64,000 bases of DNA from Dicyema japonicum (GCA_011109175.1 RDEW01000048.1:333445-397444); one strand, 5' to 3'. Positions 1,187-61,740 are shown, counted from the first letter of the stretch. The notes: generated by a model not told the origin, from the sequence alone. A program made the numbers and translations.

Positions 1187-2671
1187 ATGTCTCAATGTAT
1201 TTGTGAAATTTGTACTTGTGGGTTAATAATATACAATTACTTGTAGTCGCCATGCATGTAAGCATGAACATAGAACTCCAAAGGGAGATATTGGTCATTC
1301 AATGTATACAGAAACATATAAAACCCCCAACTACAAAAGACAACCTGCTGCAAGCCACCACCAACAGTAAACGTATCCTCAGAACCTTTGGAATCAATGA
1401 CTACTCACAAGTATGTATAACTAAAAACCATAGAACTGACTATATAAAACATGCAATGAGTAGTAGACACGTGATTCCTAAGAAAGAGGGTGAATATGAG
1501 ATCCCAAGGCAACCATTCGAAAAGATGACGGGTTACCAACAGGACTATAGACGTATGATATGTGATTAATTGTAGGATTCCGTGGAGAAAAGACAAAGTC
1601 AATGAAACCGTTGAATATTTACAAAAGTGGTGGTGAGTTTAAGGGAACCTCAAATTATAAAAGTAATATGAATATGTCATATTAGATGATTATGTGCAGT
1701 GGAATATAGAAAAGAGGAAACCAATAGAAGATGCTTATTCGTGGAACAACCATCACCAACCATTTGAAAAATATACTACTCATCAATTGGATTATGTCTC
1801 CAAACCCATTTCTATTAGAGATAATTACAAACCATCTGCACATGCCTCCACATCCACTGATCCACTCAGCAGTAATACTGATTACAGGTATTCACTACAC
1901 ATTATTGAGGTCCAACTACACAAAACATCAAATTGCTCCCAAATTTATAAGACAATCTCATGAATATGTCCCCAATCCTACACCATTTGAAGGATTTACT
2001 ACAACTGGATTGGATTTTATTAATAAAAACTCAAAACCTGCACAAAGTTGTAAACCAGACAACAAAGTATATTACTGAACACTATTCAGGCATTCACGTC
2101 ATCAGAACCATTCGCAGGGACAACCACCTTCACTAACGATTACAGAAAGTGGCCTTTGAACATACAAGTAGTAAGGGAGACACACGAATACCAACCTCCC
2201 ACAACTCTTATGAACTTCAATACAGTCTATAATAATGATTACAGGTATATTTACATCACACATTGTAGAGGACTAAATGCCCCTCCTCTTAAGGCTATTA
2301 AAAATGAGACAACTCGCAAAGAGTTACCACCATTTGAAGGACTATCAAACTACACTCAAAACTATCGTAGATGGTCTCTAGTTAAGGAACCGGTTATTTC
2401 TAATAATGACACATCTTTGCCTTCTCCACCATTTGTCGGTGTATCTAACTATCAGGAAAACTACCGACAACACAAAATGAAGCCAATAGATATAAATAAA
2501 CCAAAGACACAAGTCCACACAACGTCCTCTCCATTTGATGGTACTACAATGTACAGATCTGAGTATTTCCCTCGGAAAATAGAGTCATGCAAAGCCTGTG
2601 CTTACATAAACTTAACATCAAATGATGAACGTGGGGGACATCAATATTATAGAGTTGGGGATAATAAATAA
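1187..2671 (+). CDS. SAXO1: Stabilizer of axonemal microtubules (SAXO/FAM154 family), 8 exons
   Basis: Starts MSQCICEICTCG|RHACKH (FAM154 N-terminal Cys motif). Repeated P-F-x-G-x-T-T-x-x-x-D-Y modules. Seven 22-25 nt GT-AG introns (first 1222-1246). Needs one extra A at 1320-1323. Paralog (SAXO1 vs SAXO2) not resolved. Confidence 0.88.
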
Positions 2672-2809
2672 TTATATTTAACGATAACTAACATTTAAGT
2701 ACTTTTACCCCCTAATAATTAACTTATTGATTATATTGGCTTTTAATACTAAAGGTCACTTAACCAGATTTGTAAACTCTATATAAACCGACTGCCAAGG
2801 GACTGCTAA

Positions 2810-5690
2810 ATTAATATTAATTCCAAAGACCACTGTTAAACCGAAAAACTAAACTAACTGATACCGACGAATTGGATCAAGGCTCTCATCTTTGCTCGGT
2901 GTTGATCCCTTGAGCCTACACAAGTTCGTTGCGGGCGAGCACTTTTTTGGCATTGGTGTCCATTTTTGTTTTTTAAGATTAGTTTCTCCATGGGCGTCGG
3001 TGCTTTGATGTTTTTCCCTGTATACCATCTCTCGGTTAGTTTGAAGGCCCTTTTTTGGGTTGCGGAGATTTTCTGGATCTTCGTATAAAATGCCAGTGGT
3101 CCCCATGAAGTACACGCATATGAAATGCATGGTTCGATGTACTGTGAGTAGAGCGTTTTAAGCATAGGGTGATGTCCAAGTTTCCATAGACCTGTTAGGC
3201 ACTTCAGAAGGTTGATTTTCTTCTCACATTTGTTCAGCACGTTAGTGACGTGTCTCGTAAGTACATGTGCGTATCAAAGTCGAATCCAATATTTTTTGCC
3301 ATTTGCTGAACGGCAATGCTCTTCCCTCCGCAGTAACTTCTATTGTCTGTTCGTCAATCTTTTGTTTGAGGTATAGAGAGTTGTAACAGATTTTTCGGTA
3401 TTGATTGACATCCGATTTTCATTAAACCACTCGAGTAGTCGACTTATGTGGTGTTGTATTCTTTCCGTCGCTGTTTGGGTGTTCTGATCCCGTGAGGCTA
3501 AGACGATATCGTCTGCATAAGCCAGAAGCAGGTCGACTTCTCCATTCAGCGTCGGAATGTCAGCTGTAAATAAGTTGAATAGGAATGGTGATAACGGCGA
3601 GCCATGAGGTACTCCATTTGGGAATAAACGGGAGACAGAATTAATGTTTCCAATGCACACTCTACCTCTCCGTCCACTAAGGAAGTTAGTCAGTCAGCGT
3701 TTGAGGTTGTCGGGGATATCTGATTTGTAGATTTTCCATGTTAGATTCTTCCTTTGCACAGAGCCGAAAGCTTTGTGGACATCTAGTGAGCATAACACAG
3801 TTTTCTGGTGTCTTGGCTTGTACAGAAATCCAGAGCGAATAAAGTTAGTCAGGGATGTGAGTAAGCTTGATGTGGACCGATCCTTTTTGAAACCATGCTG
3901 GAACGGTTTATCGGAAGTCCTTTCAGTGACTTTTGTGAGGATAAGCTTTTCCAGAATTTTTGACATGGAGCATAAGAGAGAAATAGGCCTGAAGGAAGCT
4001 GGGTCTTCTTTCGGTTTTCCTGGCTTCAATACAGGGCGAATGTTTGCAAGTTTCCATATCGTTGGGATTGAGTTATAATAAATCGACCAGTTGTAGATTT
4101 TGGTCAGAGTACCGATTTCCTCATTGCCTAGGTTTTTCAGGAGGATTATGGGAATTCCGTCTGGACCATGAGAATGTGTTACTTTTGTTTGGCTTAGGGA
4201 TGCCATTACCTCCTTTTCCGTGAAATAAGTTAATTGATCCCTTTTCGGTTTTCTTAGCGGCGGTTTGGGTGGGTCAGTCTAATGTGGTTTTTGTGAGAGA
4301 TTTTCGCATAGTATTTTATTAGGGCGTTTAGGTCCTTTTGGCTGAATTCGTCATTTCCGGGTGTCCTCTCATCCACCTTTGAGATATTTCGAATCGTCTT
4401 CCAGACTACGGATGTTGACCGGTTACGATTTAATGACGTAAGGACCATCTTCCATTTAGCTCTCTGTATTTTGAATTCATTGGCTTTTATTTCTTGTTCA
4501 GCACTTTTAGACGGATCCTTGCTTCGGAGGAACGGATCTGCTTTTTTGAGACGGTTTCGTTCCTTGACCAGAGCCTTCTTTCCGTAGTCTCTCGTGTAAA
4601 CGACATATCTTTTAGGGACAGCCATTGTTTTTGCTTCCAGGATGACTTTGTTGACGTAGGCAACCACTATATTAAGGGAAGTAAAGTTTTCCAGCTGTAT
4701 GTTAGCCAAATGTTGGTAACTGATCGGAATAATTGCCAATTTGCAAGATTGTATATGCAGGTTTCTTCTTTCCACTGGTAATTTCGCTTTTGATTTTTAG
4801 CAGAATAGGGTTATGGTCACTTTGGGTGTCGTAGATGATAGACCAATTAATCGTTGTTGAAAGCTGTGGTGAACAGAGTGTGATATCTGGGGAGGTTGGA
4901 TTGTCAGAGTTCCTTTGAGGTGTTTTTTGATGGGTCATTGTCAGACTGCGACAACAGCAAATTTCCTCTTGTATCTGCAGACTGATTTAACAGCCAGAGA
5001 GGGTGTTTGGCATTCAAATCGCCGCATATCACAACTTCGTTCCAAATCTCCAGTGCTGATAAGTCCGGCATAGTGTAATGTTTCGGACATGAGCCTGGAG
5101 GCGGAATATACATGTTTACAAAATATAGTCTTCTTTTTGTTGTGCCAACAGATATTCCGATTGTCTCCGTGGTTTCATCACTTCCCAAAAGTTTCTTCGC
5201 TTCGAGTGTCTAGTCCTCACACTTTATGCCTTTTCTGATGAATGTAAGTAGTCCTCCTCCACGTTTCTTAATGCGATCGGCACGTATTATGTTATATCCG
5301 GGAAAGAGGGGCGTAGTATCTTTTGCTGATAACTCCGATTCTTGGATGAGCACAATGTCAGCTTTAAGTTTAACAATCAGAGTTCTAAGTTCAATAATTT
5401 TGCCTTTTATTCCGTTCACATTCAGTTGTATAACGGAGATCCGGTCTTTTGACTTGTGTAGGTTGCGAATCCGAGAAGCTGTAGCCAGACCAGTAATCCG
5501 TCGACCGGGAGCGACATGTACCCCGGTGGAAGAGAGCTGATGGCTTTTTTGGAAATGTTTTAGGAGCATTTTGACCGCCTCCAGAATTGTTGCATCCGGT
5601 GAACCACATGACTCCACGCTAATATCTTGTGGACGGTTGCGATTCCAAGGTAATGAGAATCTCCGTTCACTAAATTCTCTTCGATTAAAA
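2810..5690 (-). mobile_element. Near full-length (~2.9 kb) single-ORF APE-RT non-LTR retrotransposon (Ingi/Vingi/I-group-like), frameshifted
   Basis: APE: IQLNVNG, IVLIQES, NMYIPP, CGDLNAKH, SPDITL. RT: GPDGI, FRPISLLCSMSKILEK, QHGFKK, GVPHGSPLSPFLFN, AYADD. No ORF1 upstream. Confidence 0.92.
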
Positions 5691-5734
5691 TATAAAATAA
5701 AAAAAAGACATAATAATAAATAATTTAAATAATA

Positions 5735-6222
5735 ATGAAAGTAATTACTAGAGTGGGTAACCTTATATATTAAAAGTAGGGTTGTGGACTTCCAACATAC
5801 TAAAAGATTATAAAAATTCACTATTAGAGACAAGTGAGGATATTAAAAGGAGACCAATTTATTCACTGACAATATTAGGAGGACTTATTATTTTAACTAA
5901 ACTAATATCATCACGACCAGACTCATCCTCCTTTATTGATAATGTGGTACAACAAACAAACCTAATAAACTCTATTCCTTCATCACAACAAAATGACCAA
6001 TGTAAGGATGCACTCAACCACATAAACCACCTCATTGCCACTGATTCCCTTCTTTTTATTAACATGGGACTCTTTACTCTTGTATGGGAAGGGTCATACA
6101 ACAACAAACTGAGGACATTCAAGTCCACGTGGGATAATAGTAAGGAGAGATTCATTGATATGGGTGTTGTCGGCTATTGGCCACTACTTAACTATAAAAT
6201 GATAGATTATGACATTAAATAA
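5735..6222 (+). CDS. TIMM29: Mitochondrial TIM22-complex subunit Tim29
   Basis: MKVITRV|GLWTSNILKDY with a 23-nt intron (5757-5779). NMGLFTLVWEGSY and RFIDMGVVGYWPLLNYKMIDYDI match the Tim29 motifs NLGLCSLVYEAPF and RVLDVGFVGRW..L...M.D.DI recalled from the human protein. Confidence 0.8.
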
Positions 6223-6379
6223 AGACACGTGGGTTCAGTTAATTTTACTTTTTAATTTATCATAGAAAATAATAGCAACTTCCTGGGGGGGTTTAAGGAA
6301 TAATTTTATGTTAGTTGCTGGGACATACTGATTTGTGGGGCTGTTTAAATGCCATAATGCTATTTATTTTAAAACCAAG

Positions 6380-6600: not shown

Positions 6601-7184
6601 TAGAATAATTGATAATCCCCATATCAAGGGGTTTAAGAATAGCTGTTGTATTTTTTTGGAAGTTTGAGGAAAGTAAGATTTAAATAATTTTGACAAATGT
6701 GACAAACAGAATTATCAAAAATTAAGATTTGTCGATTCTGTAAGAACATTTCATTATTAATTCTTTTTAACCAATTTCTGAAAGATCACTATTCATCCAT
6801 GCAGTCTATCAGAGCCACGATGGCAATGTTTTAATTCCGGAAACTGAAATTCCATCTTGCCTCAGGTTTCAGGTGCCCTAACCCGGAGTTTTATTGTGTA
6901 ACAAAAAATATATAGAATGATTGATTGTTCTCTATGCAATAAAAAAATTAATCCATAAAAGAAATTTACAGTCAATATCCATCACTTTCATTTAAACATC
7001 AACGAAGCTTGAGTATTGTCTTTATTTTTAAATTTTAGATTAAAAATTTTCTATTCAATCCAAGTTAGTAGCAACTGAGAACTTGACCCCTTTAAATTGT
7101 GGAAGACCCAACAGAAGTAATAGAGTAATGATTTGTAATATTTTAACTATTAAGAAATAATACAATGAAACACCAATATTAAAG

Positions 7185-7560
7185 TTAATTAGCAGCCACT
7201 TCCTTAGGCTTTTTAATGGAAGAACAAGTTTCTTAACAATTTTGTGTTCTTCAATGAAGAATGCCCGTTTTATGGTATTCTTGACACACTTGTGGCATCT
7301 ATTCCCACCATATATGCGAGTGACTGTCTTGGCCTTCATTGGGAGACGGGACTTCATGGCTGGGCGTGCAGGAGTTATTCCTTTCATTTCTCTTTGCAAA
7401 TAGCACACTTTACTACTGACTTTCTCTTCTTTAAGTACTGTACAGTAAGGCGACCACCAGGAGTACGTATTCTATAATTATTTTTATAATTAATACATCT
7501 TCTTTCTGTTTGATTTGTGTTGTATGGCTTTTTACGGGTTAATTGAACTCGCTGAACCAT
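7185..7560 (-). CDS. RPL34: 60S ribosomal protein L34 (eL34)
   Basis: MVQRVQLTRKKPYNT..., IRTPGGRLTVQYLKK, YGGNRCHKCVKNTIKRAFFIEEHKIVKK. One tiny intron. Three single-A frame corrections needed (plus-strand T-runs at 7514-7516, 7387-7389, 7210-7214). Confidence 0.93.
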
Positions 7561-7639
7561 TCACACTAACAACACGTGGCTATTTAAATATTTATTTAAT
7601 TTAAAATTATATTAATTGAATAAAAATTTATTAAAAAAA

Positions 7640-9700
7640 TCTCTGTTTCTCTTCTTTCCTTGAACACTTGAGTCTATCATAGAGGCAACTGGAGGCAATT
7701 TCAGAAGAGGAGAGAAAAAAACCCCCGTCCGTATAGAAAATGTGTGGGGTCACGGTCAAAGCATCGAGAAAAGATGGCCCAATTATTGAGAGATGCCGGG
7801 ATCACCTGAAAATTAGTTAGTGGCTAAGACGGTGTTTCTTTGGCTTAAATGATAATAATAAGGAATTTTCGATGTTGTTCACCTTCACGGAGAAAATGGG
7901 ATACCAGTTTCAATCTGGCAACTAAAGAACTAAAATTACTCCCGTGTCAACCTGTTCAACATCTTCTGGAAGTCAGACTGGATGATAGCGGCTATTGAGC
8001 GGGCGCCTAGCTTTCGTCCTCAAAGATCGGATTGGCTAATCCTAATCCTCGCTGGGGACATCGAACAGAATACCGGGCACCATAAGAATGGTAAATTCCT
8101 CAATGTCATGCAATTTAACATAAACGGCTTTACACACGAATCCACTGAACTTTTGCATTTCTCTCATCCACAAAATCAATATTTCTCTCTTAGAAACGAA
8201 ACTATTCAGAATATCAATTCTTCCTTACTTCAAAATATCCTCTGTGACCGACCTAATTCAAACATGGGAGGCGGTGTAATCATCCTTATACACTAGTCTA
8301 TTTTTGTGATACTTCTACTCGGACACAAGCTCCGATTGAACTATAACATTGAACTTCCATCCTTGTCAAAATAAACCACACACCGTACACATTCGTAAAT
8401 ATTTACATCCACCACTTCATCCAGTATATAACAATATTCTCTTCAAATTGGCTGGATTACAAACGATATCATATTTTGCAGTTACCTAAGCACCAAAGAT
8501 CCACTTTGGCTAATTGGTTAAAATGGCAATGAGAGGGGAGATCTTATCTCAATTTGAAAACTAGTTATCCTCAATGAAAAAAATCACTCACTTAAACAAC
8601 TTCCAGAGTTGGACACTCCATACCTCACTCTATGTTTTCCATCGCTATCTTCGACGATATGACCATAATCGAATTCTTCTGTCAATCGAACTATTGTTAG
8701 TCACCGAAAAACCATAATTAATTACAAACGTGCAAAATGGGATTCATTCCACGAAGAAACTGAAAAATTGCTATCCGACTATTTCATTGAGTATTTCAAA
8801 TCGCTTGACACCGCAGTGAAATTTTTTAATGTGCCGACAAGAAACACATTCCAAAAGGACTCATTGCAGACTATAATCACAAATTTTCTAGGAAATTATC
8901 AAAAAGATTCATAAAGACGCCGACTTAAAAATCAATATTTTCTACGGCCAAACTGTCCAACCTTAGTAATGAAATTAGAGAGTTAACTTTATAACCAAAA
9001 TTAACTACCGAATAAAACTAAAGGATTTATGGGGGACTTTACGTGGAATTCGAGACAAAATAGAATGGACACAACCCACGCCACCGGTATTGACAAGAAT
9101 CAAACACCACGTGATTTCGCACATCATGCAGATATAATAATGGACCATTGCGCAAAAGTGAGTCCATCAACATGAACGAATGCTTCCGTCCATGCAAATT
9201 TAGAAGCGTACAAATGCCTCAAGAAAACCGATTGTAATCAGACTGATCTTGGAAACCTGTAAAAAACGCCAAAAACTCTCCTGCCAAAAAGTTTGATAAA
9301 ATCGCATATACAGCTCCTGGGAATCCAGTGACTTAAATCAATTACAAATACAACAACTGCCGAATTCCTGCACTATGAAAAAATCCAAACAATCCCAATT
9401 CTGATGCCCAAGAAAGATCCTTCGGATCCAGGATCTTTCAGACCGATTTCACTACTACCTGTAGTATCGAAAATTGTTGAACGTATTAAAGCTAATATCA
9501 GAGCATCTTCCCTTCCCAGATTCTCAAACATGGACGGAAATATTCAACAACACATAGCCTAATATATCACTGATGGTTACAACAATTAATATCCTCACAA
9601 ATGTGCAACCTCTACAAGTTGACAACAAATCACCTATTTTAATGTCATGAATTAACATAATATTCCTCAACAATACAAGGACTAATCAATCTATGGGAGT
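7640..9700 (+). mobile_element. Highly degenerate APE-RT LINE preceded by a LINE 3' scrap
   Basis: GGGATCACCTGA end motif at ~7798. 2A-like LILILAGDIEQNTGH, then MQFNING and GGGVIILIH (APE). RT scrap KKDPSDPGSFRPISLLPVVSKIVERI at ~9400-9490. Confidence 0.75.
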
Positions 9701-10002: not shown

Positions 10003-12569
10003 TTTTTAAACAATAACAATTTATTGAAGAATAAAACTAAATAGTTAAAGGCTACTGGCTGCTCTCAGGATTGAGAGCGCATTTCCCCTTACGATCTGTA
10101 AGGAGATGCGCTCAATGAGCCAGCCCTTCTCTCTGACATCCCTCCTCCTTTTAGCGACTAACGATCCAATTTTGTTGAGCAGGGCTAACGACCTGCTTCC
10201 TATGACTCCCGAAGTTTCGACTGCGACTGGTTCAAATGTGTACTGTTCGCCGAGGCATGTGTACTTCTTTGCTTTAAGTATTTCTGCTTTCTCTGCAGCT
10301 GAGCCTGGATTTGTCGCACTCATTGTAATATTGGAAGGGGAGAAGCTATCTACGCAGGTGGGCATCCCAGGCCAGGTACTTCCCAGCATCCCACGGGAAC
10401 AGAGTCATTGGTTCAGTGTCCGATCCGTTAATGTAGCGTAGGATCTGGTGAACTAGACCACGGGAAGCATATGTCGAAGACAGAAAGGCTGGAAGGGCGA
10501 GTTCAAGTGGCGAGCGTATCTCAATTCCTCCATAACGAAGTGGTAACTTGCATTGGGTCCACCCTGTTTTATCCAGAGAGATGTTAAGTGTTTCTTCAAC
10601 AGAGGTCCTCAGCTTCTCATCGATAACTCTCAAGAAATCCATGTCTGTGAAACATGGGGATGTCCGTAGAAAAAAAAGAAGTCGTGGTGAAAATTCTTGA
10701 GGATGAAGAGAGAAATGTGGTGTAAGGTGAAAATTCTTGAGGATGAAGAGAGAAATGTGGGAGTCCAAAGCTTTTAGATTGTGCGTGAGCAGCTGTACGG
10801 ATTCACTCTTCTCCTCCAGGACAGTTGACATGTCATACAGAGGAGATCCGAGGAAAATTGCCTTTTCTAGTCGGGTGACTTTGATGTCCTGGAGGCAAGT
10901 AGAAATGGTCGTTATTGCGCGTTCTAAGGTGTCCTCTCCACAGGTCACGTTAATAACTTTGCACATCGATGGATACGGCTCCAGTCGAGTGCCGCGAGGG
11001 CAGGGATGACGCGTTTAACCTCTTCCACGACAATTTCCCAAACTCCCTCCAATGGTCGCGTCATCAAGGTACCATAAGTTCAAGGAAGTTTTGATCGCAG
11101 ATGATACACAGTTGATACCCAAAGCAAAGAGTAAAGGGCCAAGTGGGTCTCCTTGTTGGACTCCAGTCTTGGACTTGATGGCGTGTTGTCCGAAGATCAG
11201 CGTACACGGGGAACCATATGAGAGTCTGACCATCCTGCTGATCTCATAAATCCTGAGACACTATCTTCTATGATTCTATCTTCGGATGCTATTGAATGCA
11301 TTACGTATGTCCAGTTTGACTATAATTGAATCCTGCGCGTCAGGAGGGCTGGCAACAAAATTCCGGATTGAATGTATTACTGCATCACATCCATTAGGTA
11401 CTCCAACTCCGAGTTGGACAGGACTAAGTTCGGCACTCAAAGTCTTGCTGGCTGCTCTGGCAGCGATCTTCGACGATAGGCGCCTAAGGACGTTACCAAT
11501 GGCGATGGGTCTTATCCCGCCGCAAGGATTCTTGAAGGCTACCAACCTCGAAGCGAAGAGGAGTTCTCAAGCATACTCCGAGATATCTGCCCGAAGAACG
11601 TGGTTCGTAAGAGCATTCAATGAGACGATGAGGGAGTCCCCTGTGTCGACGGTTGTTACAGAGGTGAGGTCTTTTATGTGGCTTGGGGCGTAGCCCGTCC
11701 AGACCGGCGCCGCTGCTTCCAGGGAATGCACGAATAGCCCATTTAATATCATCAGAGGTGCCATTTAGTTGTGGGACATCCTTTTGAATTTCGTGTCACG
11801 TAGATCAGCTGGTGCGGGCGGAAATTTCTGGACTAACTGGTCTAAAATTTCTTTTCTTGGTGAAAGAACCTTGTCGCTGCTGAAGAGTGTACGTAGGACT
11901 CCCCGAATGTCCCCGACCATGATCTTCTTGTTTATTTCTCTGCGAAAATCCCTTTTCTTGGTTCTGGATGAAGAGGGTGAGTCAACAGCAGTCGAAATGC
12001 TTTCCAGTGTATCCGCCAGGTTGATACTTTCGTATTTAGAAACGTTTTTTTTGATGATTGACTTGACATTCCGTCCTTCAGTTCGGTCGGATGTGATCCG
12101 AGGACAAGAGGTGCAAAGCAGAGAAGGCGCATCCAAGCTTCTTGGGTGTTGTCACTGACTGCTTTGGTGATTAGTTTTGAGAGACACGTGGTAGCTGCTA
12201 GGCGACTTTGGGATTCTGAGTGGGATAACCCTCTCTGATACAAGCCGGTTCAGGCGCGTAAACATTCGTCCGTGTTAGATAGGTCCAGGACTGAACCAGA
12301 GAGCGGTTCCTTTTGCCTTGTGGGGTTCCCAAGAGATGTGGGGCATGACCAACTTGGGAGACACTGAGCAGTCCGTCTTGTCAGCTTGTTGCACCCAAGG
12401 TGTCCAAAATTTGGGCAACGGGAACATTGGATACTATATTTCCTCTTGTTTGCCTCTCCACAGATAATGCAGGGGATAGACGTGCGAGAAATATGCTTTT
12501 GGGTTTCGGTGTTGGTTTCGGATCGTTTTCCATTGTCATGTTCAATCCAAAAAGTAGAACGGCCAATAC
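10003..12569 (-). mobile_element. CRE-clade-like (RLE endonuclease) non-LTR retrotransposon, internally deleted, with an N-terminal PHD finger
   Basis: GGIRPIAIGNVLRRL, QLGVG, KLDIRNAFN, GVQQGDPLGPLLF, WYLDD (RT). PW..GKYLAWDAT, KY, FEPVAVETSG, ISLQIVRGNA (RLE). CIIC..CSRC..H..C..W.C PHD pattern. Short A tail and a 12-bp TSD. Confidence 0.88.
10686..10760. repeat. Local tandem duplication (period 40) inside the CRE-like element
   Basis: GGTGAAAATTCTTGAGGATGAAGAGAGAAATGTGG occurs at 10686 and 10726. Confidence 0.9.
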
Positions 12570-15700: not shown

Positions 15701-15745
15701 TATATGAATAATAACACGTGGGTAAAGAATTAATTACAAAAGACT

Positions 15746-16671
15746 TTAAAAAGTATTAAAATGTCCAGATTTAAAGAAATTAAATTGAATGTAATTTCCC
15801 CTATAAATAAGTAAAGACATAACCAGTCAACAGTCACACATTGCCTCATCAATATCTTCTCAGCAGTCCCCCAACTAGATCTTACTATTGAGGGATATCC
15901 AAATATGTGATCAACACTGTTTAACATAAATTTCTTAGTAATTGGGTCTATGATAATCCATCAGTAATACCATTAGGATAACCACTTCCATAATCCTCAT
16001 AGTCAAATCCCTCAGGAAATGACCAATCACGGAGAGACTCATCCCTTGCCACTTTTGCACAAATACTTGCAGCCCCCACAACAGGAAATAACAAATCAGC
16101 CTTTGACCTCACCTCAAAGTTGACTTTCTCCTTAAAGGACATTGATAATTTGGTGTGACAGATTGATGGTTTACCAATAGTGTCCACATACACCTAAAGT
16201 GATTATTAGAGACAACAGTGTGAATGTCCACTCCATCATCAATCAAAGTTTGTACAAGAGAGACCACACAGTCCATTGATATTTGGTTAAGACTATATTT
16301 GGGAGTCTCTAACATTTTATTTGATATCAAAAGAGGTGAGATATACTTAACAATCCACATGAATGACCCACTGTGAATCCCATTCTTAAGTTTGTCAATG
16401 ATTTGTTCACGTTTGATGGGAGTAATGGTCTTAGAATCTGTATAATATTATAATAATACCAGTAGCACCAATCTCATTGAGAGTGTCCATCATGTGCAAT
16501 GGTACTACAAATGCACCAAACACTAAATTACCTAAAATTATATATATTATTACCCAAAACAGGACCTCTACCAGCCTCATCAATACCCACTATACATTTG
16601 TTATTCTTACAGACATCACTAACCAATGATCGCTTTATATATTTTGTTAATTGTTCACACTTCAATAACAT
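15746..16671 (-). CDS. RNASEH2A: Ribonuclease H2 catalytic subunit A, 6 exons
   Basis: GIDEAGRGPVLG, DSK, VYVDTIG, KADLLFPVVGAASICAKVARD, YGSGYPNDP, VRSSW. Five 22-23 nt introns. Confidence 0.95.
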
Positions 16672-29049: not shown

Positions 29050-29560
29050 ATGATTTTAAAAGACTATTTATTGAAAATGGACACTACGTAATTTTCCAGA
29101 TTTCGTGTACAAAAGTTTCTGTTTGTCCTCAAAAAACTCAGGAGAGACATTTTTACATTCCATATTAATAATTTTAGTTAGGTCGCTTTCCAAAATTCTC
29201 TTCTCCAAATATTGTTTGACCCCTGTTTCATCTTTCCCAAAATCTATTGCACTAAACGTCGAATATGCGTAAGATAAGAACAACCTGGAGTATGAGAATA
29301 GTTAGGCGAAATAGCGCATAAGTTCTGTACTATTTTTTTCACTTTTTAATGCATTCTTCGTAAAAGTCCTCAATTAACTCAAAAATGTTAATCACGGATT
29401 AAATTTTTTGAATAAAAAGATGCAGCCTTCAACCAGTTGCCCAATCTCGTCAATACGACTTTGGGAGGAATTCCAACTTCAGAAACAACAATTTCCGCTT
29501 TGGTTCTTCCTAATATAAGCTTGTACGCCTTATTCACCGAGCTGCCCCTTCTATTCAAAT
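29050..29560 (-). mobile_element. hAT/CGGBP1-like transposase relic
   Basis: PPKVVLTRLGNWLKAASFY matches the P..V.TRWG.WL.AA.YY motif. Confidence 0.45.
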
Positions 29561-29569
29561 ACTATCGAA

Positions 29570-29750
29570 TTATCTACAATCATACAGAAATTTTGAGCCG
29601 ATGCCATGTCCAATGAGAAGAGCTGTTCAGGATTCTCGACCCCGCCGGACTCGTTCTCATCTTTGTCGGTCTGGGATCACTTAGTTAGATGAGAACTTTT
29701 ATTTCTTTCTCTTTGACCCAGTGATCCTGGGGGGTAATAATAATAATAAT
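29570..29750 (+). mobile_element. 3' end of the (TAA)n-tailed LINE family (copy 2)
   Basis: Nearly identical, in inverted orientation, to 31175-31350; ends GGTAATAATAATAATAAT. Confidence 0.85.
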
Positions 29751-32235: not shown

Positions 32236-32410
32236 CGGATTTTCTTGGGAACCACATAACAGGACAATAAATAATAATTATCTGTTTCAATTTAATATGT
32301 TTATAGTGTTGTTGATGTAGTAAATGTTAGTTCAATATATGTTTTATAAATATGTAATATTAAATTATAAATTTAAATTGATTAATATAAATAATTAAAT
32401 TTGTGATTCA

Positions 32411-45337: not shown

Positions 45338-45435
45338 CGTAATAAAGAATTAGAAAATTTAAGAATCACGTGGTCAAAACTATTATCTTTAAGCAGTTTG
45401 ATAGATGAGCCAATAAAGATAACAGTCAAGCATAA
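45338..45435. repeat. ~95-bp direct repeat, left copy flanking the R4-like element
   Basis: Aligns with 49290-49380 (CGTAAT.AAG.ATTAGAAAATTTAA...CACGTGGTCA.AACTATTATCTTTAAG...AGCCAATAA.GATAACA.TCAAG). Confidence 0.85.
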
Positions 45436-45439
45436 TTAA

Positions 45440-49290: not shown

Positions 49291-49380
49291 GTAATGAAGC
49301 ATTAGAAAATTTAATAAAACCACGTGGTCAGAACTATTATCTTTAAGATAAGCCAATAACGATAACAATCAAGTACAATA
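49290..49380. repeat. ~95-bp direct repeat, right copy flanking the R4-like element
   Basis: Aligns with 45338-45435. Confidence 0.85.
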
Positions 49381-49552: not shown

Positions 49553-50912
49553 ATGGTATTATTATTATTTTACACGATTCTCTCCATAAATTCACTTAAA
49601 TTCACACACTTACCTAACTTTGAGACAATCACAAACAATAACATTAAAGTGGAATGCAAAACTGATTATAAATCAGCAAAGTCTTAATTCCCAGTTATAT
49701 TTAGAATTCGGTGGAGGCTCAACGGCATTAATAGTTCCAAACCAGTCCTCACCTTTACTAGAGGACAAATTGGGGAATTTCAATGCATTGCCTCAAATGG
49801 TAATGACACAATTTATTCTCCCATGTTAAAACTAATAAAACCAAGTATTTGTAATCTACATTAAGAATCAATCGATAAGCCTGAGTTTATATTCCAATTC
49901 AATTCCCGTGGACTCGTCTTCAAATATTCTCAACTCTCGACTGGTTATATTTACAAAGATCAGGTGGAGTGCACAGGAAATGCACAAATTATGGATGATA
50001 GTAATAATATTTAATTTATCAAGAATATGCATATATTATGGAATATCATGAAACTATTGAATGTCATGTAAAATCACTAAACATCACTACTGCTATATAT
50101 AAGGTTACTCCCTCTTTTACTGATTGTATTAATATAAAATATGTTTTCATAGTCTAAGATGATTTACCCCCACGTGGAGCCTCACTTGTTGTATCAGACG
50201 TAGATTCAGGGATTTGTGTGTCGAGCAACTGGTTGAATATAAATGTAATAAACAGTGACAATTCCAGAATATTTATAAACAAAATAACATAATAACTGAA
50301 CTTAAAAACATCGAAAGTGGTTATTACACGTGCATGGATTGTAATGGGGAAGAACGTCCTTTTCAATTGACCTTTGAAGGTTTAATGATGAGTAATTAAG
50401 AATCTGTTAAAATACTTATTAAATTTGACAAATACACAAAAGTTAATGAGAAATTGTTACAATTGGAATGCCCCACAACGGAACCTCTACAAACATTCGT
50501 TGGTACTTTGACACTGAAAGAAATGGTAGAATGTAAAAAACTAAGAAATAAAAAATACTCGTCAAAAAGAATCGATTATTCTAGAATATGATGAAATATT
50601 TTCTTATGGAAGTGATACAAGACTGGTCTCTTGTTTCGTAATGAATCGTGACTCAATGGACTACAGAGAGACTATGCTGGAGAAAAGTTATACAAACAAA
50701 TAATATTTAGAAGTCCAAGTAAACTCAAATAAATTAACAGAGAGATTACTTGAGAATTTACGTACTGCTTTTATAGTGATGACAGTAATATTGTGTGTGA
50801 TTATATTAATTCTCATTACTTTTAGTAATCAGTATTTATTATATTTAGTTTGGAAAATATCATCACAGAAAAAGAAAATACACAGAGAGACTCAGTTCAA
50901 CACTTTTTGTAA
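49553..50912 (+). CDS. Immunoglobulin-superfamily type I membrane protein (signal peptide, at least 2 Ig-like domains, TM helix, short tail)
   Basis: MVLLLFYTILSINS signal. VEC...|IRWRLNG...GEFQCIASN (Ig C-W-C). ESGYYTC (second Ig F strand). TM TAFIVMTVILCVIILILITFS. Introns 49681-49704, 49845-49865, 50001-50023, 50380-50400. The middle exons need frame corrections. Confidence 0.72.
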
Positions 50913-51829: not shown

Positions 51830-52075
51830 GAGCGCTACGCGACCAATTCGCGTTTTATCCGATAGTGGTCGAGACAACTGGAAAAATAAGTGGAAAATCG
51901 CTTCGCTTCCTCAAGAACTCGGACGCTTAGTTACACTAAAAAGCCACGACGCACGTGAGACCCGGTGGCTACTCCAGTTGATCTCTGTTGCAATCGTAAG
52001 AAGCAACGCAACGTCGATAATGTCGGCGGGATCCACTTTGGATTGATGGCAGTTTTAAATAAAAGATTAATTAAA
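51830..52075 (+). mobile_element. 3' scrap of a second CRE-like element
   Basis: ELGRLVTLKSHDARETRWLLQLISVAIVRSNATSI parallels the RLE end at 10045-10250. Confidence 0.7.
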
Positions 52076-53413
52076 TAATTTATGATAAATTTCGCGGAAA
52101 TATAAAACTGTTGGGAACCACTGCTATAGTAAATTGTTGGATCCTCTATGAAAAAATTGTTCGTTAGAAAATTGCTTAAAACTTTAAAAAAACACATCAG
52201 ACTTTCGTAAAAAGAAAGACTGCATTTGCATAGGAATGTTTGGGAGGAGATTGTGCTCAGTCTTTTTCATATAAAGATGTTAGTGAAATTTAAGGCTGGT
52301 TGGAAAATAGACTGTTCCCATTAAGAAAATTCACTTGGCACTATTTACGTCAGCGAAAAATAATTATTTCGATAAGAAAGAATAGTCAACTTAGCTTTGA
52401 ATGGCAATATCTCTCCCGATTAAAGAGATCATATTCTGAGACATGTTTAAAAAGATACCTAAATATTGTCGGGATAATCAACCAGTCCTATGGATTGCGT
52501 TTCATCCTACTCTTCGATGAATATTTAATTCCGTCGTTTTTTGGAGCCCAAGACTTCTTTAAACCTTTCCTCTTTTCTATTACTATTGAGAAAATAACAA
52601 AACTTGCTGTCTTCTCTCAAACTATTGTATCTGGATGATGCACTTCTTGAGGTTCCCAGATGTTGTCACTTTTGTATGAAGCTAGCGGTTCGGTACCACC
52701 AATGACAGGGACAAGTGTGGAATTATTAACTGTGGACATTCGATATCGATTTTCCCAAGCCCATTGTTCTTTCCATTCGTTGTTGTCAGGGAGTTTTTTC
52801 TTGATTCTTTTTTGACTAAAAGTGCGATGGAGAAAGTGATATTTAACAAATCCTCTTTGTCCATGGCTTCTTGACCATTACACTGCTTGGTTTCTACTGA
52901 GGTAAAGTCTATCTATCCAATTGACGTCGACCATCTACTAAAATCTATCCCCGTGACTATTCATCACTCTAACCTTTCTAAGATTTGCAACGGAGTCTGG
53001 ATGATGTTTCATGCCGAAGGGTTTTCGATAAGCTACTTAAATCCTCAAATCAACACTGTCGTGCATATCTGTTGTACAGAGAATCTCTTAAATAGGAGTG
53101 GCTTAAAAGAGTTTTGGAGCTAGCTACGAGCTGAATTCCTTCGCCTTAGACTGACGATCTGTCTATCATAAACAAAGTCAAATCTTTGACATTACAAGAG
53201 GTCAATTGAATGTTTTATCCATGGACGCAATAATAATGTCATTGGCATATAAGAGGATCGTTTTCTGGGTTGTTGTGACCATCCAATAAGCAGATTCGTA
53301 GCCAGTTGAATTAATGATTAATCTTTTGGCTTTATTTTGACAATAATAATTATTTTTTAATAAAATAAATTATTTAAATTATTTAAATATTTTAACGATT
53401 AATAAACACGTGA

Positions 53414-56864
<3,451 letters not shown>

Positions 56865-57544
56865 TTTGTTTTGATTTTGCTTTCGTATTTTGTGAAAATA
56901 TTGTTTTATTAAGGTTTTTGGTAATACCACTGTGGGACTGTTATCCGATAAAGGTAATTTTCAACATCGGATTTTGTCTGAAAGTAAGAAGGGAGTAGTG
57001 TATTCGGGTTTGTCGGTAAGTTTGTAAGCTGAATAAGACTAAAGAGAAAGTCACATCCGAAAATATAATCTTCATATTACGGATCTTTTTGTTTAATAAA
57101 TGATGTTTTGTCAAATACTGTTGATAGGCAATGAGTGATCATTTTGGAGTTTTATCACAATGAATTTACTAAGCTATAGTTTCATGTTGGGACTATTTCG
57201 AATATATTTTGTCACAAGTTACCAAGGAACAGAGTTTGATGTATTGGTGATATCTACTAACAAAGGGACAGGTTTCCAGTGAGGATTAGGTAATTATAAA
57301 TTAGGAAAGGGGGTCAGGAACCAACGGGTTTTTCAACCTTGGTGTAATTGCAAAGGACAAATTTCTGTCTTGACTTTACAACTAACACACATCTCTTCAA
57401 CATTTTGGTAACAAAACATGCGGTTCGTCTTATTTCTAATATTATTTCATATTTGTAAATTTTTTAAAATTTACTCTCAAAAAAATTATATCTTGCTCGG
57501 ATATTCCTTTATCAATCTTTTCCATCTTCTAGAGCAGAGGTTTC

Positions 57545-57650
57545 GACAGAGGAAGATGGAAAAGACTAACTATAAATATTGTTTCTTTGAGTGTTGCACA
57601 TGCGGGGCTATAATCATTATGGCTTTCGTGAAAGTGCCTTAATAATAGAG
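57545..57650 (+). mobile_element. 3' end of the RTE-like family (copy 2)
   Basis: RWKRLT...GCACATGCGGGGCT...CGTGAAAGTGCC-TAATAA; matches 15420-15500. Confidence 0.7.
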
Positions 57651-57679
57651 CAGAAGTTACCAGATTTTTTACAAGCCTC

Positions 57680-58900
57680 CCTTTTTTTATTTAACCTAAG
57701 ACCACCGTAAACCCAAACTAACTATCACGTGATCCAGATGCATTCTAGCAGAGACATCAACTTTGCCAGGTGTGCTTCCTTCGTGCCCGCGCATGAACGT
57801 ACGGCTGCCTGAATTTTCAGGGCCACCTTCCCGTGATCTTGAGTCCAGTCTTATAAGGGCCTCCAGAGGCGTAGGTCTGGTTCGGTGATCTTCACAAATC
57901 CAACGCTCCGTTACTCTGTAAGCCCTCTTTTGCATTTCCTCAATTTTCCTCATATTTGTCCAAGATATGGACGGTCCCCACGAGGCGCATGCATATGAGA
58001 AACATGGCTCAATGTATTGTTTGTATACGTTCATCAGGCTCGTGTGAGTACCACTCTTCCATATTCCCGATAAACTTTTCAATACGTTCTTTTATTCTCC
58101 CGAGCACAAGCCTCTCCAGGATTTTTGACATGGAACATAGTAGTGACACCGGTCTAAAAGACGCTGGATCATCTCTCGGTCTTCTTGATTTCAGTATTGG
58201 CCGAATTATTGCATGTTTCCATAATAATGGTATCACATTCTGGTCAATCGAACAGTTGAAGACCGACGTAAGGAAAGTGATTCCCCTGTCTCCAAGATTT
58301 TTTAATGAAATAACAAGAATGTTGTCTGGTCCGTGGGAGTATGTCACTTTTACGAAATGTATTGTATCCCTTACCTCTCTCCGAAAAAAAGAGTGGTTCT
58401 GATAGTCTCTTTAGTTAGCTTCGTGATGGTAGTGTATCAGACTTCATGTGCTTCTTGTGTGAAATTTTAGTATAGAATTTTATCAAGTTGTTCACACCTC
58501 GTTAAACATAATCCTCCTCTCTTAAAATTTCATCGCCTTTTGCCACATTTCGAATAGCTTTCTACACCTCTCCCGTATTGCGATTTCTATTTACCATTGT
58601 AACGATTCCACTTCATCCTCTTGGCATTGAGTTCTTTTGCCTTCATTTCATTATTCAATGTTCTGATCCGGAGTTTCATATCCAAGGCTATCCGGTTAGA
58701 TTTTTTAAGCTGATTTCTTTTTTTAATCAAGGCCGTCTTCCCTCGACCACTCGACGAATTTAAGTAATGTTTGGGTATAGCCCTTGATCTTGCTTCCAAG
58801 ATTATGTGGGTAAAGTAGCTGATGGCATTCTCCAGAGAACTGAAGCTATCCAAGTAACAATTCTTAATTTCGTCTTCTGAGATTTCGCGATACAATTTCT
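57680..58900 (-). mobile_element. APE-type LINE relic related to 2810-5690, RT core deleted
   Basis: SHGPDNI, DPASFRPVSLLCSMSKILER fused directly to post-RT sequence; YKQYIEPCFSYACASW; A-rich end at ~57683. Confidence 0.85.
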
Positions 58901-59019
58901 AGTTAGAAAAAAATATACAATCTTATGACTCCCTTTATGTTCCATGATATATTATTTGTAGCATAAAAATTTTTTTAACACAAAAAAGTTAGTGAGATAA
59001 ATGTTTTTCATTCTTTACA

Positions 59020-59560
59020 CAAAGTATTTGAAATCTGAGGAGAGTTCTACTAGTTAAGAGACCCTGAAGATGTTACTCGTAGGAAGATCCTTGCTATGAG
59101 TGGACTGAAAAAAATATCGTCAACGTGGAGCCACAAAAAAAGGATAGTACTAAACACCAGACTTATAATATACAAAGCTTTTGTCATCCGGTACTAATAT
59201 ACAACTCTGAGACTTGGGGCATCCCTAAACGGGAAATGGACCGTCAACTGACCTATGAAGATCTCCAATGCAAACCTTTATAATAAATGCAAATCCGGCG
59301 TGCTGTCAAATGATATTTTCAAATCAAGATGGAGCCTCTTTGGCCACATGTTACGTCTAAATGACCAAATCCCAGCAAATGTCGCAATGGACAACTACTT
59401 CGCACACACAGGAGCCAGGTTCCGTGGTAAACCAAGAACGACACTACCGACTATCTTGAATGAAGACCTATCGGCGGTTGGTATGAGACTAAATTCGACG
59501 GACGACCTGGACTACTTAAGAGAACAGAAGATCATTGTCGAGGCTTACTGAGAGGATGAA
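59020..59560 (+). mobile_element. RTE-like LINE C-terminal relic
   Basis: PVLIYNSETW, RWSLFGHMLRL, FRGKPRTTLPTILNEDL. Confidence 0.8.
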
Positions 59561-59829
59561 TCGGAATACGGCAAAAGGGAGGCTTAATTAACTTTATGTT
59601 TTCTCGGGCCTCGAATAAGATTTTAGATACCTTTCACTTTTTTCCTCCCAACCAAAAGGAATCAACATACAAGGATTTATTCCGTTAGCATGCAGAGCTA
59701 AACGCGTTTTCTCGAGTTTTTTGAAAATTGAGTCTCTCCATTTTGAGTCGTGCCATCCTTCTAAACCGTATAACACTCCAGGAGTATTGCTGAGTTGAAG
59801 GCATAAACATTATTATTAAGCCGAAAATC

Positions 59830-61740
59830 ACCAGGTAAACTAATTAAAAGGAAAACGCTATCAGGTGGTCACGGCTTCTCAGCAATATTCTCATTTTTCC
59901 GGTATTGCTCTCGGGAACCGACACATGTTCGATAGCACCGTTCTTCTGGCGGTTTTCCATTTCGGGTAAATATGCCGCCGGAATTCCTCACAAGGACCTC
60001 AAATAGGGTTGCCCTTATTGGTATTCTTCGAGAAATTGTTTTGGTCATATTGGATTCAACGGAGTTGATGTTTGTTTTGGCGAGTTTTGTTCCTTAAGCT
60101 CAACATTCATACTTATAGTTGGCTCGATGAATTGAGTGTATAACATGGATAGTGACTGGTTTGAGGATCCTCTAAAATTTGAGACGAGCACATTTACGAA
60201 GTTAAGCTTTCGTGCCGAAACACTGATTACGTTTGACACACGTGTGCTGAATTTTGGCTTGTTTCTTAGGATTAGTTCACCACTTAAAAATAGTTAGGCA
60301 GAATAGCTTGATGGTTATTATTATTAGCACTTCCACGAGAGCCATAATATTTATAGCCTCGCATGTGCAGCAAAAAATATAAGAGAATTAGTTGTGTCCA
60401 AAAAGTCTCCAACGCCTTCTATTCGACGTAAAAAAGAGGTAAAGGACTTTTCTGTATACGATGACATTGAATTTCTGTTCAACCATTTATGGAGTCCGTC
60501 CAGAGTAGTTTGTAATTTGTTAGTAGCTGTCGTAACACATATATCCTTGCAAGTCATATATTATGTCATCGGCAGAGTAGGTTAGTTTTTGGGATTCGAT
60601 TTTCACTGGTGAAAACGATGTATGATTATGACCACATCTTGATTTCATCAATGACACGGGAGGATCCTCGTAATTTTTATGAGGTAAGTAGCTGTTCATC
60701 ATTCTATCAAGTTCTATTTTGCTGATATCAGAACTGTTTCTCTTCTCAGGGTTTTTGATCATTGAAAGAGTCTTCCACATGATTGACAGGGACCCCTGTT
60801 TGTTAAACGCGGAGGTAATTTTTCTCCATTCGTTCATTTTTCTTTCTTAGAGATCCAGCACTCGAATTCTGTACATAATTTCTGGTATTGGCCTTTGGAT
60901 GCTTTTGAGTCGATTACACTCATTCATAATCTTCTTGGTTTTGTGATCAAAACGTTCAATGTAAGATTTGATTGACCTTTCCCTGATAAATACTTCATTG
61001 CCTTCTGGATCTTTTTGTTAACACAAGAGACTGCATTATCGAGTGAGTTGAAACGCACTGCGTCGTAATCTGCTAAGTTTATGTCCACACATTGAGCAAA
61101 AATTTTCTAATTAACGTTTCTGTAATCCAGGAACGTGTTGCGTTTTTTTCCAAGATGAGCGTGTTTTTCATCCGAATGAAAATAGGATTGTTGGCGCTCT
61201 GGAAGTCATAAATCACAGATTAGTTGGCAAGAGAAGCAATTAGGGGTGGCAAGGGTCAAATCAGGTGAAGTCGTGTTGTCATCAGCTCTATAGGGTGTTC
61301 TTGTGTTCATCCGATAGTCGTTAAGGATTATGAAGTTATCCAGTAGAAAGAGAAGAAAATTTCCTTTGGCATCATCAGTTCGGCTTTTGTACATGGTCGG
61401 GTGTTTCGCGTTGAGGTCTCCACATATCGACAAATGTTGGTATTGATGTAACACATTCATAGAGAAAATAAGTTTTTTTGGGCAGGAGCTGGCAGGGGGA
61501 ATGTACATGTTCGCAATTGTGATATTTCCCATTCTTGTACGAATGGAGATCCCAGTGTATTCCACGAGAGACGGAAGATTGTAATGTAAAGGCGTTATAA
61601 TGCCTGATCTCACTTTTCACGAGAGTAATAACTCCTCCACGGCCAAACTGGCGGTCCTTCCTGATAACAGTGTATCCCGGAAGTGTTGCAAATGATTCTT
61701 TTTACTGTGTAACTAATTACACACCAGCGAACCACATGAC
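59830..61740 (-). mobile_element. Degenerate APE-RT LINE with a nested RTE tail
   Basis: NMYIPP, CGDLNAKH, TSPDLTL (APE). YSADD, LQTTLDGLHKWL, LYTQFIEP (RT/thumb). The 5' motif GAACCACATGAC is shared with ~5600. Confidence 0.8.
60315..60395 (-). mobile_element. 3' end of the RTE-like family (copy 3), inserted in a LINE RT
   Basis: Matches 15425-15485 and 57595-57650; LINE coding sequence resumes on both sides. Confidence 0.75.

Follow-up and report, generated by a model that had tools for sequence, protein, structure and literature searches.

A dense, gene-confined excess of the palindrome CACGTG in a 64-kb stretch of the Dicyema japonicum genome

Why should the genes of an animal be studded with one exact six-letter palindrome? 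The question is raised by a stretch of 64,000 nucleotides (nt) from the genome of Dicyema japonicum (GCA_011109175.1, RDEW01000048.1:333445-397444; hereafter the window), for which the initial annotation had reported that the word CACGTG marks host genes and avoids transposon DNA. The D. japonicum genome has a GC content of 36.7%, is 49% repeats, and contains many copies of the second open reading frame (ORF2) of long interspersed nuclear elements (LINEs) (PMC6736024). An exact search of the window returns 42 CACGTG sites, the first at 1468 and the last ending at 60244, against a mean of 5.65 (standard deviation 2.31, maximum 11) in 100 shuffles that preserve dinucleotides. The earlier count of 41 was therefore nearly right, and the GC content, which had been put at ~35%, is 37.4% when measured.

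The word also stands out among all hexamers. In a ranking by z-score that pools both strands, and in which each palindromic site is consequently counted twice (42 sites giving 84), CACGTG occurs 84 times against Markov expectations of 12.2, 17.6, 26.9, and 53.3 at orders 1, 2, 3, and 4, and it has the top z-score of all hexamers under orders 1, 3, and 4. The runners-up, CCACGT/ACGTGG and ACACGT/ACGTGT, are overlaps of CACGTG, and none of the hexamers of the same composition comes near it in z-score or otherwise behaves like it. The sequences flanking the 42 sites are mutually unrelated, except for one repeat-borne pair at 45367 and 49321, which is also the single repeated pair found by self-blastn; copies of one repeat are thus ruled out as the origin of the sites. 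Other palindromes are ordinary in frequency in the window, with two exceptions. GTCGAC is ∼3-fold over-represented (18 sites against ∼5.8 at order 1, for example at 3438, 17505, 17519, 21011, and 55278), its excess being equal in genes and in nongenic DNA, and GTGCAC is under-represented (2 against 6.5).

Could the excess be a mere by-product, arising from base composition, from the codons or amino acids that the genes use, or from repeats, so that no genuine feature lies behind it? The GC content is slightly higher in genes than elsewhere, and a fourth-order Markov model shrinks the excess to 84 against 53 on both strands. Even so, the fourth-order z-score is still 4.2, the highest among hexamers, and the pentamers from which the expectation at this order is derived are inflated by CACGTG itself. 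Synonymous, codon-order, and dinucleotide shuffles yield 2-6 sites where 24-42 are observed, the unrelated flanks and the lone repeated pair speak against repeats, and the CpG poverty of the genes lowers the expectation for CACGTG rather than raising it. Artefacts of composition, codons, and peptides are ruled out by the dinucleotide, Markov, synonymous, codon-order, and amino-acid shuffles, and we give next to no credence to an explanation of this type.

For the comparison of genes with their surroundings, host DNA was defined as Pfam-supported genes padded by 30 nt, and expectations were taken from Markov models of orders 0-2 trained on the same DNA. The host genes (17,973 nt, 38.6% GC) hold 32 CACGTG sites, or 1.8/kb, against 2.4, 1.9, and 3.9 expected at orders 0, 1, and 2, which amounts to an enrichment of about 8- to 17-fold. 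LINE DNA (13,088 nt) holds four sites with about 1.8 expected, and the other DNA (32,939 nt) holds six with 3.5 expected. Over the 46 kb of nongenic DNA, 10 sites (0.22/kb) compare with 4.1-5.2 expected, that is, 1-2 times chance (P = 0.04); two of these ten come from one repeat family, and two more are paired at 50.2-50.3 kb. The division is sharp. Inside ATG-to-stop spans lie 28 of the genic sites, and the remaining 4 are within 30 nt outside them; the 5.4 kb located 31-300 nt from genes contain none, against ∼9 expected at the genic rate (P = 8e-5). A site is found within 30 nt of 11 of the 12 genes, one common rate accounts for the numbers in individual genes (chi-square P = 0.2), and the genic density corresponds to about one site per 0.5-0.6 kb.

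The CACGTG excess is a DNA-level property of the resident transcription units that ends sharply at gene ends. The split given in the initial annotation, 33 sites in ∼22 kb of genes and 8 in the remaining ∼42 kb, was close to the exact figures, and its contention that the word marks host genes stands, the ∼8-fold difference in density being incompatible with an equal distribution over genes and transposons within the window. The contention that CACGTG avoids transposon DNA does not stand, as both LINE and other DNA are at chance or slightly above it, with no depletion. Transposons lack the enrichment, yet they do not avoid the word.

The excess is not a consequence of what the genes encode. The sense-strand ORF segments (14.8 kb) contain 24 sites, compared with 3.8 ± 1.8 in within-gene synonymous-codon shuffles (maximum 11 in 2000) and 2.2 in codon-order shuffles of the same segments, and the spliced models contain 26, compared with 4.5 ± 1.9 under synonymous shuffles; under codon-aware shuffles, the ratio of observed to expected thus remains ∼6. 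The sites occur in all three codon phases, as had been proposed, with 10/9/7 in the spliced models or ∼8/10/7 after correction by hand (40334 being intronic and 54067 in phase 1), counts that are approximate because parts of the alanyl-tRNA synthetase (AARS, or AlaRS) model are mis-framed. Where the peptide permits the word, it tends to be spelled. CACGTG is used in 10 of 15 His-Val contexts (3.0 expected from codon usage), in 9 of 19 [SPTA]-Arg-[VADEG] contexts (1.3 expected), and in 7 of 13 x-Thr-[Cys/Trp] contexts (0.2 expected), the last class relying on ACG, which elsewhere makes up only 9% of Thr codons. Altogether, 26 of the 47 permissive codon contexts in genes (∼55%) spell CACGTG, as against 3 of 26 in LINE ORFs (Fisher P = 4e-4).

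Amino-acid shuffles yield 28.6 ± 5.2 permissive peptides where the genes have 47 (P = 0.001), so that the pressure toward CACGTG acts on protein sequence too. In an alignment of RNASEH1 homologues, three of the four sites fall on residues common to the homologues (TW, HV), with use of the rare Thr codon ACG, and one encodes Thr where the homologues have Ser, Asn, or Lys. The nucleotide-binding loop of the NAD(P) transhydrogenase NNT reads PAHV here, where we take its relatives to have PAK(I/V), and the HxxxH motif of AlaRS reads THVV, where THLL is presumably usual.

Noncoding parts of the genes carry the word as well. The introns of the spliced models have a mode of 23 nt, and D. japonicum is the sole nonmyxozoan animal with introns so short (PMC13644364). 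Three sites (21556, 40334, and 55415) are located within micro-introns of 20-23 nt, as had been noted earlier and as the spliced models and the restoration of reading frames now bear out; they represent 3 sites in 1.75 kb of intron, where 0.13 are expected (P = 4e-4), and 3 of about 66 introns. Because both introns and positions flanking the coding sequence (CDS) carry CACGTG, amino-acid demand, codon bias, and translation are excluded as causes; the earlier denial of amino-acid demand is supported by the shuffles, the intron sites, and the four sites just outside CDS ends. CACGTG is imposed at the DNA level, overriding codon choice and shifting proteins toward permissive peptides.

The word is also favored as a whole rather than as a member of a family. 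Among variants that differ at one position, those with a changed inner base fall short in genes (22, with 40.7 expected, 0.54) and not outside them (95 against 70.6, 1.35), whereas those altered at the outer positions number 18 against 11.7 expected in genes and are at or above expectation outside. The deamination products CATGTG and CACATG are only mildly low, at 0.83 of expectation; the counts behind these ratios are small. A general enrichment of E-boxes (CANNTG) or of ACGT cores is ruled out, as the other E-boxes CAGCTG, CACCTG, and CATATG are ordinary or low in frequency, and ACGT outside CACGTG is as depleted as the remaining CpG tetramers. The related ACGTG words that had been described as common are for the most part occurrences of CACGTG itself, the one word that exceeds expectation in genes being CACGTC/GACGTG (9, with 3.2 expected).

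The ratio of observed to expected CpG is 0.48 in genes and 0.80 elsewhere, and 32 of the 324 genic CpGs (10%) lie within CACGTG, the next commonest NNCGNN hexamers having 5 sites each. At the codon junctions of genes, TG and CA are in excess (1.33), and GpC stands at 0.55, compared with 0.43 for CpG when the motif is left out; over whole genes, GpC is also low, at 0.63 compared with ∼0.8 in LINE and other DNA. These values suggest, rather than demonstrate, methylation-driven decay of CpG in genes, and because GpC is low too, gene-body methylation is not established as the cause of the CpG poverty. Protection of CpG from decay is ruled out as the sole cause of the excess, since 32 sites exceed the 2.4 expected without CpG depletion.

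The flanks of the genic sites are informative about how the word may be read. On the sense strand, the base at -1 is A in 12, C in 13, T in 3, and G in 4, and the complement of the base at +1 is A in 12, C in 12, T in 5, and G in 3. Among the 64 half-sites, T precedes the core in 8 (P = 5e-4) and A or C in 49 (P = 1e-5), so the preferred flanks are A/C before the word and G/T after it. Since the two sides are nearly identical, the pattern points to a symmetric duplex site read by a two-fold symmetric reader and not to a single-stranded RNA motif. Genic sites are at least 92 nt apart (P = 0.003 against uniform placement), and no spacing period between 100 and 250 nt is significant among them (P = 0.09). 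Of 21 permissive contexts that are unused, 6 are <70 nt from a used one, compared with none of the used sites (Fisher P = 0.005, post hoc); a minimum-spacing rule is suggestive only.

We regard it as established that the exact CACGTG hexamer is put in place or retained by a strong force that acts at the DNA level and is confined to genes. As to its nature, we tentatively prefer the view that CACGTG is a selected site to which a dimeric protein specific for this word binds, a basic helix-loop-helix leucine-zipper (bHLH-Zip) factor of the Max network being the most plausible one. The word would be read on double-stranded DNA by a two-fold symmetric protein with specificity for CACGTG, for which a bHLH-Zip factor of the Max/Myc/Mnt type is a candidate; this type is named because its known dislike of T before the core fits the flanks, MYC:MAX as well as MAX:MAX disfavoring tCACGTG (PMC5515408). 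Such a reader would bind throughout genes, with roughly a site in every 0.5-0.6 kb, and would thereby label the transcription unit as resident or active chromatin within a genome of which half derives from LINEs. The sites would then be maintained against mutation by selection on this mark, at a cost in codon choice and in some amino acids. The core, the flank preference, the match to transcription units whatever the function of the gene, and the chance-level density in LINEs all favor this proposal, as do the 14 HLH-domain genes that D. japonicum has kept while most other transcription-factor families were cut down (PMC6736024, Table S5).

The canonical E-box read by Myc/Max/Mnt, USF, TFE, and Cbf1/Pho4 has the identical core hexamer and the same two-fold symmetry, and the dicyemid core stands in flanks typical of such factors. 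Growth and housekeeping genes are the classic class of Myc targets, and many of the marked genes here are of this kind (tRNA synthetase, eIF3, ribosome biogenesis, and mitochondrial import). The placement is different. E-boxes occur singly or in small numbers, and their places are promoters, enhancers, and first introns, whereas dicyemid CACGTG runs at ∼1.7/kb through coding regions; 28 of the 32 genic sites are in ATG-to-stop spans, and just 2 are immediately upstream of an ATG. Other E-box variants are not enriched in the window.

Several points weigh against a Max-like reader under selection. What ties the word to bHLH proteins is its core, a single preference in the flanks, and the number of HLH genes given in a paper, and the flank preferences could come in part from codon structure. 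The E-box factors known so far work at promoters and enhancers, and none is known to bind at ∼2 sites/kb through coding exons. Extrapolation to the genome gives ∼10,000 weakly selected sites, and their upkeep asks much of a parasite whose effective population is presumably small, a consideration that favors neutral drive. The site upstream of RPL34, the only one that can be compared across species, is not conserved in a related contig described below, and when labels are permuted among the 47 permissive contexts, the spacing effect weakens to P ∼0.1.

Two further classes of DNA word bear on the idea of a mark on resident genes. Periodic An/Tn clusters (PATCs) in germline genes of Caenorhabditis elegans, which Frokjaer-Jensen et al. 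are said to have treated in 2016, are reportedly thought to license expression in repressive chromatin. Like CACGTG, they are a DNA-level, noncoding signal spread through resident gene bodies amid transposon-silencing chromatin; unlike CACGTG, they are 10-bp-periodic A/T runs confined to introns, with no exact palindrome and no invasion of codons. Chi (GCTGGTGG) is read by RecBCD, and DNA uptake sequences (DUS/USS) are read by a competence receptor. These resemble CACGTG as short words that resident DNA contains in strong excess and that foreign or mobile DNA seldom contains, and they differ in being bacterial, nonpalindromic, and strand-oriented, with roles in recombination and uptake that have no evident counterpart for the dicyemid word.

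The cyanobacterial palindrome HIP1 (GCGATCGC), to which the initial annotation had likened CACGTG, is the closest known parallel. HIP1 is likewise a short exact palindrome, present at tens of times over expectation and with one copy or more in about every gene; it occurs in coding regions regardless of frame and in noncoding DNA too, it overrides codon choice, and its near-cognates differ mainly at the outer positions. Dicyemid CACGTG shares the >10-fold palindrome excess and a frame independence that goes beyond codon usage and peptide content. In other respects the two differ. HIP1 is a cyanobacterial octamer and CACGTG a hexamer of an animal nuclear genome; HIP1 is chromosome-wide with a 10-90 kb periodicity, whereas the CACGTG excess in the window ends within 30 nt of transcription units; HIP1 has the cognate methyltransferases DmtA and DmtC, with none known for the dicyemid word; and the key evidence for HIP1 is the conservation of sites between genomes, whereas dicyemid CACGTG is compared at one orthologous site only. 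The function of HIP1 has itself been unsettled for decades, with selection and methylation-linked repair as competing accounts (PMC5861425, PMC4390886).

A methylation- or repair-driven ratchet is a close rival of a binding factor. In such a ratchet, a methyltransferase or a nicking or repair enzyme specific for CACGTG or for its near-cognates would bias the repair of mismatches or deaminations toward the full word, acting only in accessible or transcribed chromatin, or having lacked time on transposon insertions, so that sites build up in genes while serving no use. Very-short-patch repair provides a precedent, as a pair of methyltransferase and mismatch endonuclease that raises its own recognition word genome-wide; Bhagwat and McClelland reportedly found in 1992 that it shapes the frequencies of CCWGG-related words in E. 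coli. That effect is modest compared with the 10-17-fold excess of CACGTG, does not by itself explain a confinement to genes, and depends on enzymes that are not known here. In Elhai's model of HIP1, methylation-linked mismatch repair fixes mutations that create the word, and the deviations from HIP1 are concentrated at its outer nucleotides (PMC4390886). The dicyemid word carries a HIP1-like signature, being frame-independent, overriding codons and some residues, and consisting of a single exact palindrome with no degenerate family, and the depletion of inner but not outer near-cognates, in genes and not outside them, fits as well. The ratchet further predicts a set-point density with a minimum spacing, as seen, it works without selection having to be effective at thousands of sites when the population is small, and the CpG poverty of genes, the excess of TG/CA, and the large share of genic CpGs that lie in CACGTG are compatible with methylated gene bodies. 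Against it, the genome has no known gene for a methyltransferase or for a Vsr-like or MutH-like protein, none of the genes encoded in the 64-kb window is a methyltransferase, and we found nothing in the literature on DNA methylation in dicyemids; GpC in genes is depleted almost as strongly as CpG, so decay by methylation is not demonstrated. A plain genome-wide drive, moreover, does not predict confinement to genes: 46 kb of nongenic DNA, including stop-broken, degenerate LINEs, remain at 1-2 times chance, and the excess ends ≤30 nt from genes, so that the ratchet must assume nongenic DNA to be inaccessible or too young. In HIP1, site conservation argued for selection over biased repair (PMC5861425). 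On balance, we consider the ratchet possible but somewhat unlikely.

Two other accounts seem to us less probable. In one, which the initial annotation had already listed and which is a specific version of the binding mark preferred here, CACGTG would be the signal by which the somatic rearrangement machinery recognizes genes, to be kept or amplified, and repeats, to be shed as circles. The partition of CACGTG follows the divide between genes and LINEs and ends at gene borders, and 11 of the 12 genes carry it whatever their function; dicyemid somatic cells are described as having chromatin elimination, extrachromosomal circles, and selective amplification in the passages of PMC6543705 that cite Noto 2003 and Awata 2006. 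This support is purely circumstantial, the CDS of RPL34 and that of RNASEH2A are free of the word, and for the Arf-like gene it is missing even from the adjoining 30 nt. We know of no elimination system that uses a dense intragenic hexamer; elimination in ciliates employs RNA guides, and the break regions of Ascaris are without motifs. We therefore hold this account to be doubtful, and we are equally reserved about the broader notion that dense CACGTG, running across exons, micro-introns, and untranslated regions and powerful enough to have altered codon use and proteins, is a genome-wide tag of the resident gene, by which a dedicated reader would sort ∼5,000 genes from the transposon-derived half of the genome, for example during programmed elimination or amplification. 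A signal at the RNA level, in which CACGUG in pre-mRNA is bound by a protein or pairs with itself and thereby aids export, stability, or micro-intron splicing, would agree with an enriched domain that equals the transcription unit, including positions on the untranslated-region side and introns. It appears very unlikely, as the reverse-complement-symmetric flanks on the sense strand fit a dimer on duplex DNA instead, introns carry the word as densely as exons do and yet are spliced out, the sites located 1 and 12 nt upstream of ATGs are in very AT-rich leaders that are possibly untranscribed, and with so few introns carrying the word there is no link to splice sites.

A comparison with a probable second dicyemid is possible to a small extent. 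Contig VCDQ01007651.1 of the Octopus sinensis assembly GCA_006345805.1 (87 kb) contains, at bases 59,799-80,176 (L001:1-20378), an RPL34 gene that is 80% identical to that of the window in amino acids and 73% in nucleotides and that is interrupted, at the matching position, by an intron of 30 nt. Further along are an Arf-like gene with 70% nucleotide identity to window positions 43158-43730 and relatives of the LINEs at 46-49 kb of the window. Judging from these similarities, the contig is probably a dicyemid contaminant of the host octopus assembly, through which a second dicyemid genome might be reached. Its 20.4 kb, of which only about 0.7 kb is CDS, contain 1 CACGTG, and at the single orthologous site that could be compared, the aligned position upstream of RPL34, the word is missing. 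Protein searches for dicyemid orthologues of RNASEH1, TIMM29, and NNT returned none, the window's own RNASEH1 being likewise not on record. Our literature search found no paper that pairs dicyemids with CACGTG or Dicyema with DNMT1 and no report that CACGTG is in excess in gene bodies or at synonymous sites of any eukaryote, animals included.

Hyper-abundant palindromes that override the code have been known from cyanobacteria, their purpose unresolved for ∼30 years, and we found no animal example in the literature. New here are the boundary at 30 nt, the CpG setting of the word, its Max-like flanks with their strand symmetry, the minimum distance between sites, and the excess of permissive peptides. 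CACGTG shows that a DNA-level force is able to bend animal protein sequences, it serves as a sequence-only classifier of resident and mobile DNA in a poorly annotated genome, and it provides a concrete cis-element to set against the long-standing reports that dicyemids eliminate and amplify DNA. Whether the cause is a protein reader coating the bodies of genes or a ratchet of sequence-specific repair, either would, if true, be new biology for Metazoa.

Genes were called from Pfam scans of exon-sized ORFs together with spliced-ORF models. The features of the window are collected in the table below.

Table. Genes, LINE-derived DNA, and isolated CACGTG sites of the window
Feature	Coordinates	Strand	Evidence	CACGTG sites and remarks
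Resident gene, weak SAXO-like match	1252..2671	+	Spliced-ORF model; Pfam SAXO1-2, E 4e-4	1468 (exon)
Degenerate LINE copy, reverse transcriptase and endonuclease	2857..5842	-	Pfam RVT_1, Exo_endo_phos; blastp to other copies	0
TIMM29	5735-6222 (5735..6231 with 9 nt)	+	Pfam Tim29, E 2e-28	6126 (exon, phase 2); 6226, beginning 3 nt past the stop codon
RPL34	7055-7560 (7055..7578 with 18 nt upstream)	-	Pfam Ribosomal_L34e	7573-7578, 12 nt from the ATG at 7560; none in CDS
Isolated nongenic site	9108..9113	.	Exact search	9108
Site in GC-rich region adjoining PHD-finger ORF (gene or transposon)	12185..12190	.	Exact search, Pfam, blastp	12185
EIF3I	13018-14217	-	Pfam EIF3I on two exons, E 1e-14 and 3e-17	13555, 13724, 13816, all exonic
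RNASEH2A	15730-16671 (15715..16671 with site)	-	Pfam RNase_HII, E 3e-10	15715-15720, ending 9 nt beyond the stop; none in CDS
NNT, NAD(P) transhydrogenase	19484-22849	+	Pfam AlaDh_PNT_C, PNTB_4TM, PNTB; spliced model of 1030 amino acids	19772, 19945, 20141, 20470, 20749, 21556 (within 23-nt intron 21550-21572), 21764
RNASEH1, single exon	22937-23614	-	Pfam RNase_H, Cauli_VI	23027, 23136, 23451, 23562
Brix-domain gene	26004-27424	+	Pfam Brix	26723
LINE copy	29514..32326	-	Pfam; blastp to other copies	0
RRM-domain gene	32411-33004	+	Pfam RRM_1, E 1e-3; spliced model	32670
WD-repeat gene, then coiled-coil gene	37400-40510	+	Pfam WD40 families	38841 (exon); 40334 (within 23-nt intron 40327-40349, removal of which restores one long ORF)
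Arf-like GTPase gene, four short exons	43122-43743	+	ORF translations; 70% nucleotide identity to Arf-annotated gene of the octopus-assembly contig	None; only resident gene of the window without a site within 30 nt
Nongenic pair	45367..45372, 49321..49326	.	Self-blastn repeats 45330-45436 and 49282-49379 (∼100 nt)	45367, 49321; flanks near-identical
Nongenic site, LINE-related region	45602..45607	.	Exact search, blastp	45602
Pair in AT-rich unannotated DNA, possibly a small gene	50171..50332	.	Exact search	50171, 50327
Site in ORF family with further copies at 10.0 kb and 0.5 kb	51952..51957	.	Exact search, blastp	51952
AARS, alanyl-tRNA synthetase	53414-56864 (53407..56864 with site)	+	Pfam tRNA-synt_2c; spliced model	53407 (53407-53412, one nt before the ATG at 53414), 54067, 54343, 55237, 55415 (within micro-intron 55404-55423), 55593, 56010, 56510, 56710
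LINE-derived DNA	57532..61616	-	blastp to other LINE copies	57726, 60239

Pfam confirms the gene names assigned in the initial annotation (TIMM29, RPL34, EIF3I, RNASEH2A, NNT, RNASEH1, Brix, RRM, the WD gene, and AlaRS). Its cluster lists for AARS (9), NNT (7), RNASEH1 (4), and EIF3I (3) are exact, as are the placements that it gave ahead of the AARS and RPL34 start codons and after the TIMM29 and RNASEH2A stop codons. LINE-type fragments of reverse transcriptase and endonuclease occupy 2.9-5.8, 24.4-25.9, 29.5-32.3, 45.0-46.6, and 57.5-61.6 kb; they are stop-broken and share 35-57% protein identity with each other. Sites 45367 and 49321 were inherited with the repeat, because both of its copies carry CACGTG. 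A 75-amino-acid minus-strand ORF in the region 50171..50332 has no match in Pfam.

The GC-rich block at 10045-12705 (46-48% GC) contains several ORFs, including a PHD finger at 12253-12576 on the minus strand, and a sole CACGTG at 12185. CpG is not depleted in this block, which has relatives at the protein level at 51801-52043 and 502-675 and may be either a transposon or a gene family. An ORF of 205 amino acids at 35831-36448, with no Pfam match and no CACGTG, has an internal repeat (35866-36325) with up to 5-fold self-coverage in blastn. AlaRS has one AT-rich intron of 173 nt (53774-53946), its remaining introns being 20-27 nt long; at 53947-54003 and 54590-54650, no GT..AG intron joins the conserved reading frames, which could be due to assembly indels or unconventional splicing. 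In the last exon of NNT, an in-frame GT..TAG segment of 24 nt (22473-22496) splits the conserved HPVAG-RMPG stretch and is probably a micro-intron that keeps the frame whether it is spliced or not.

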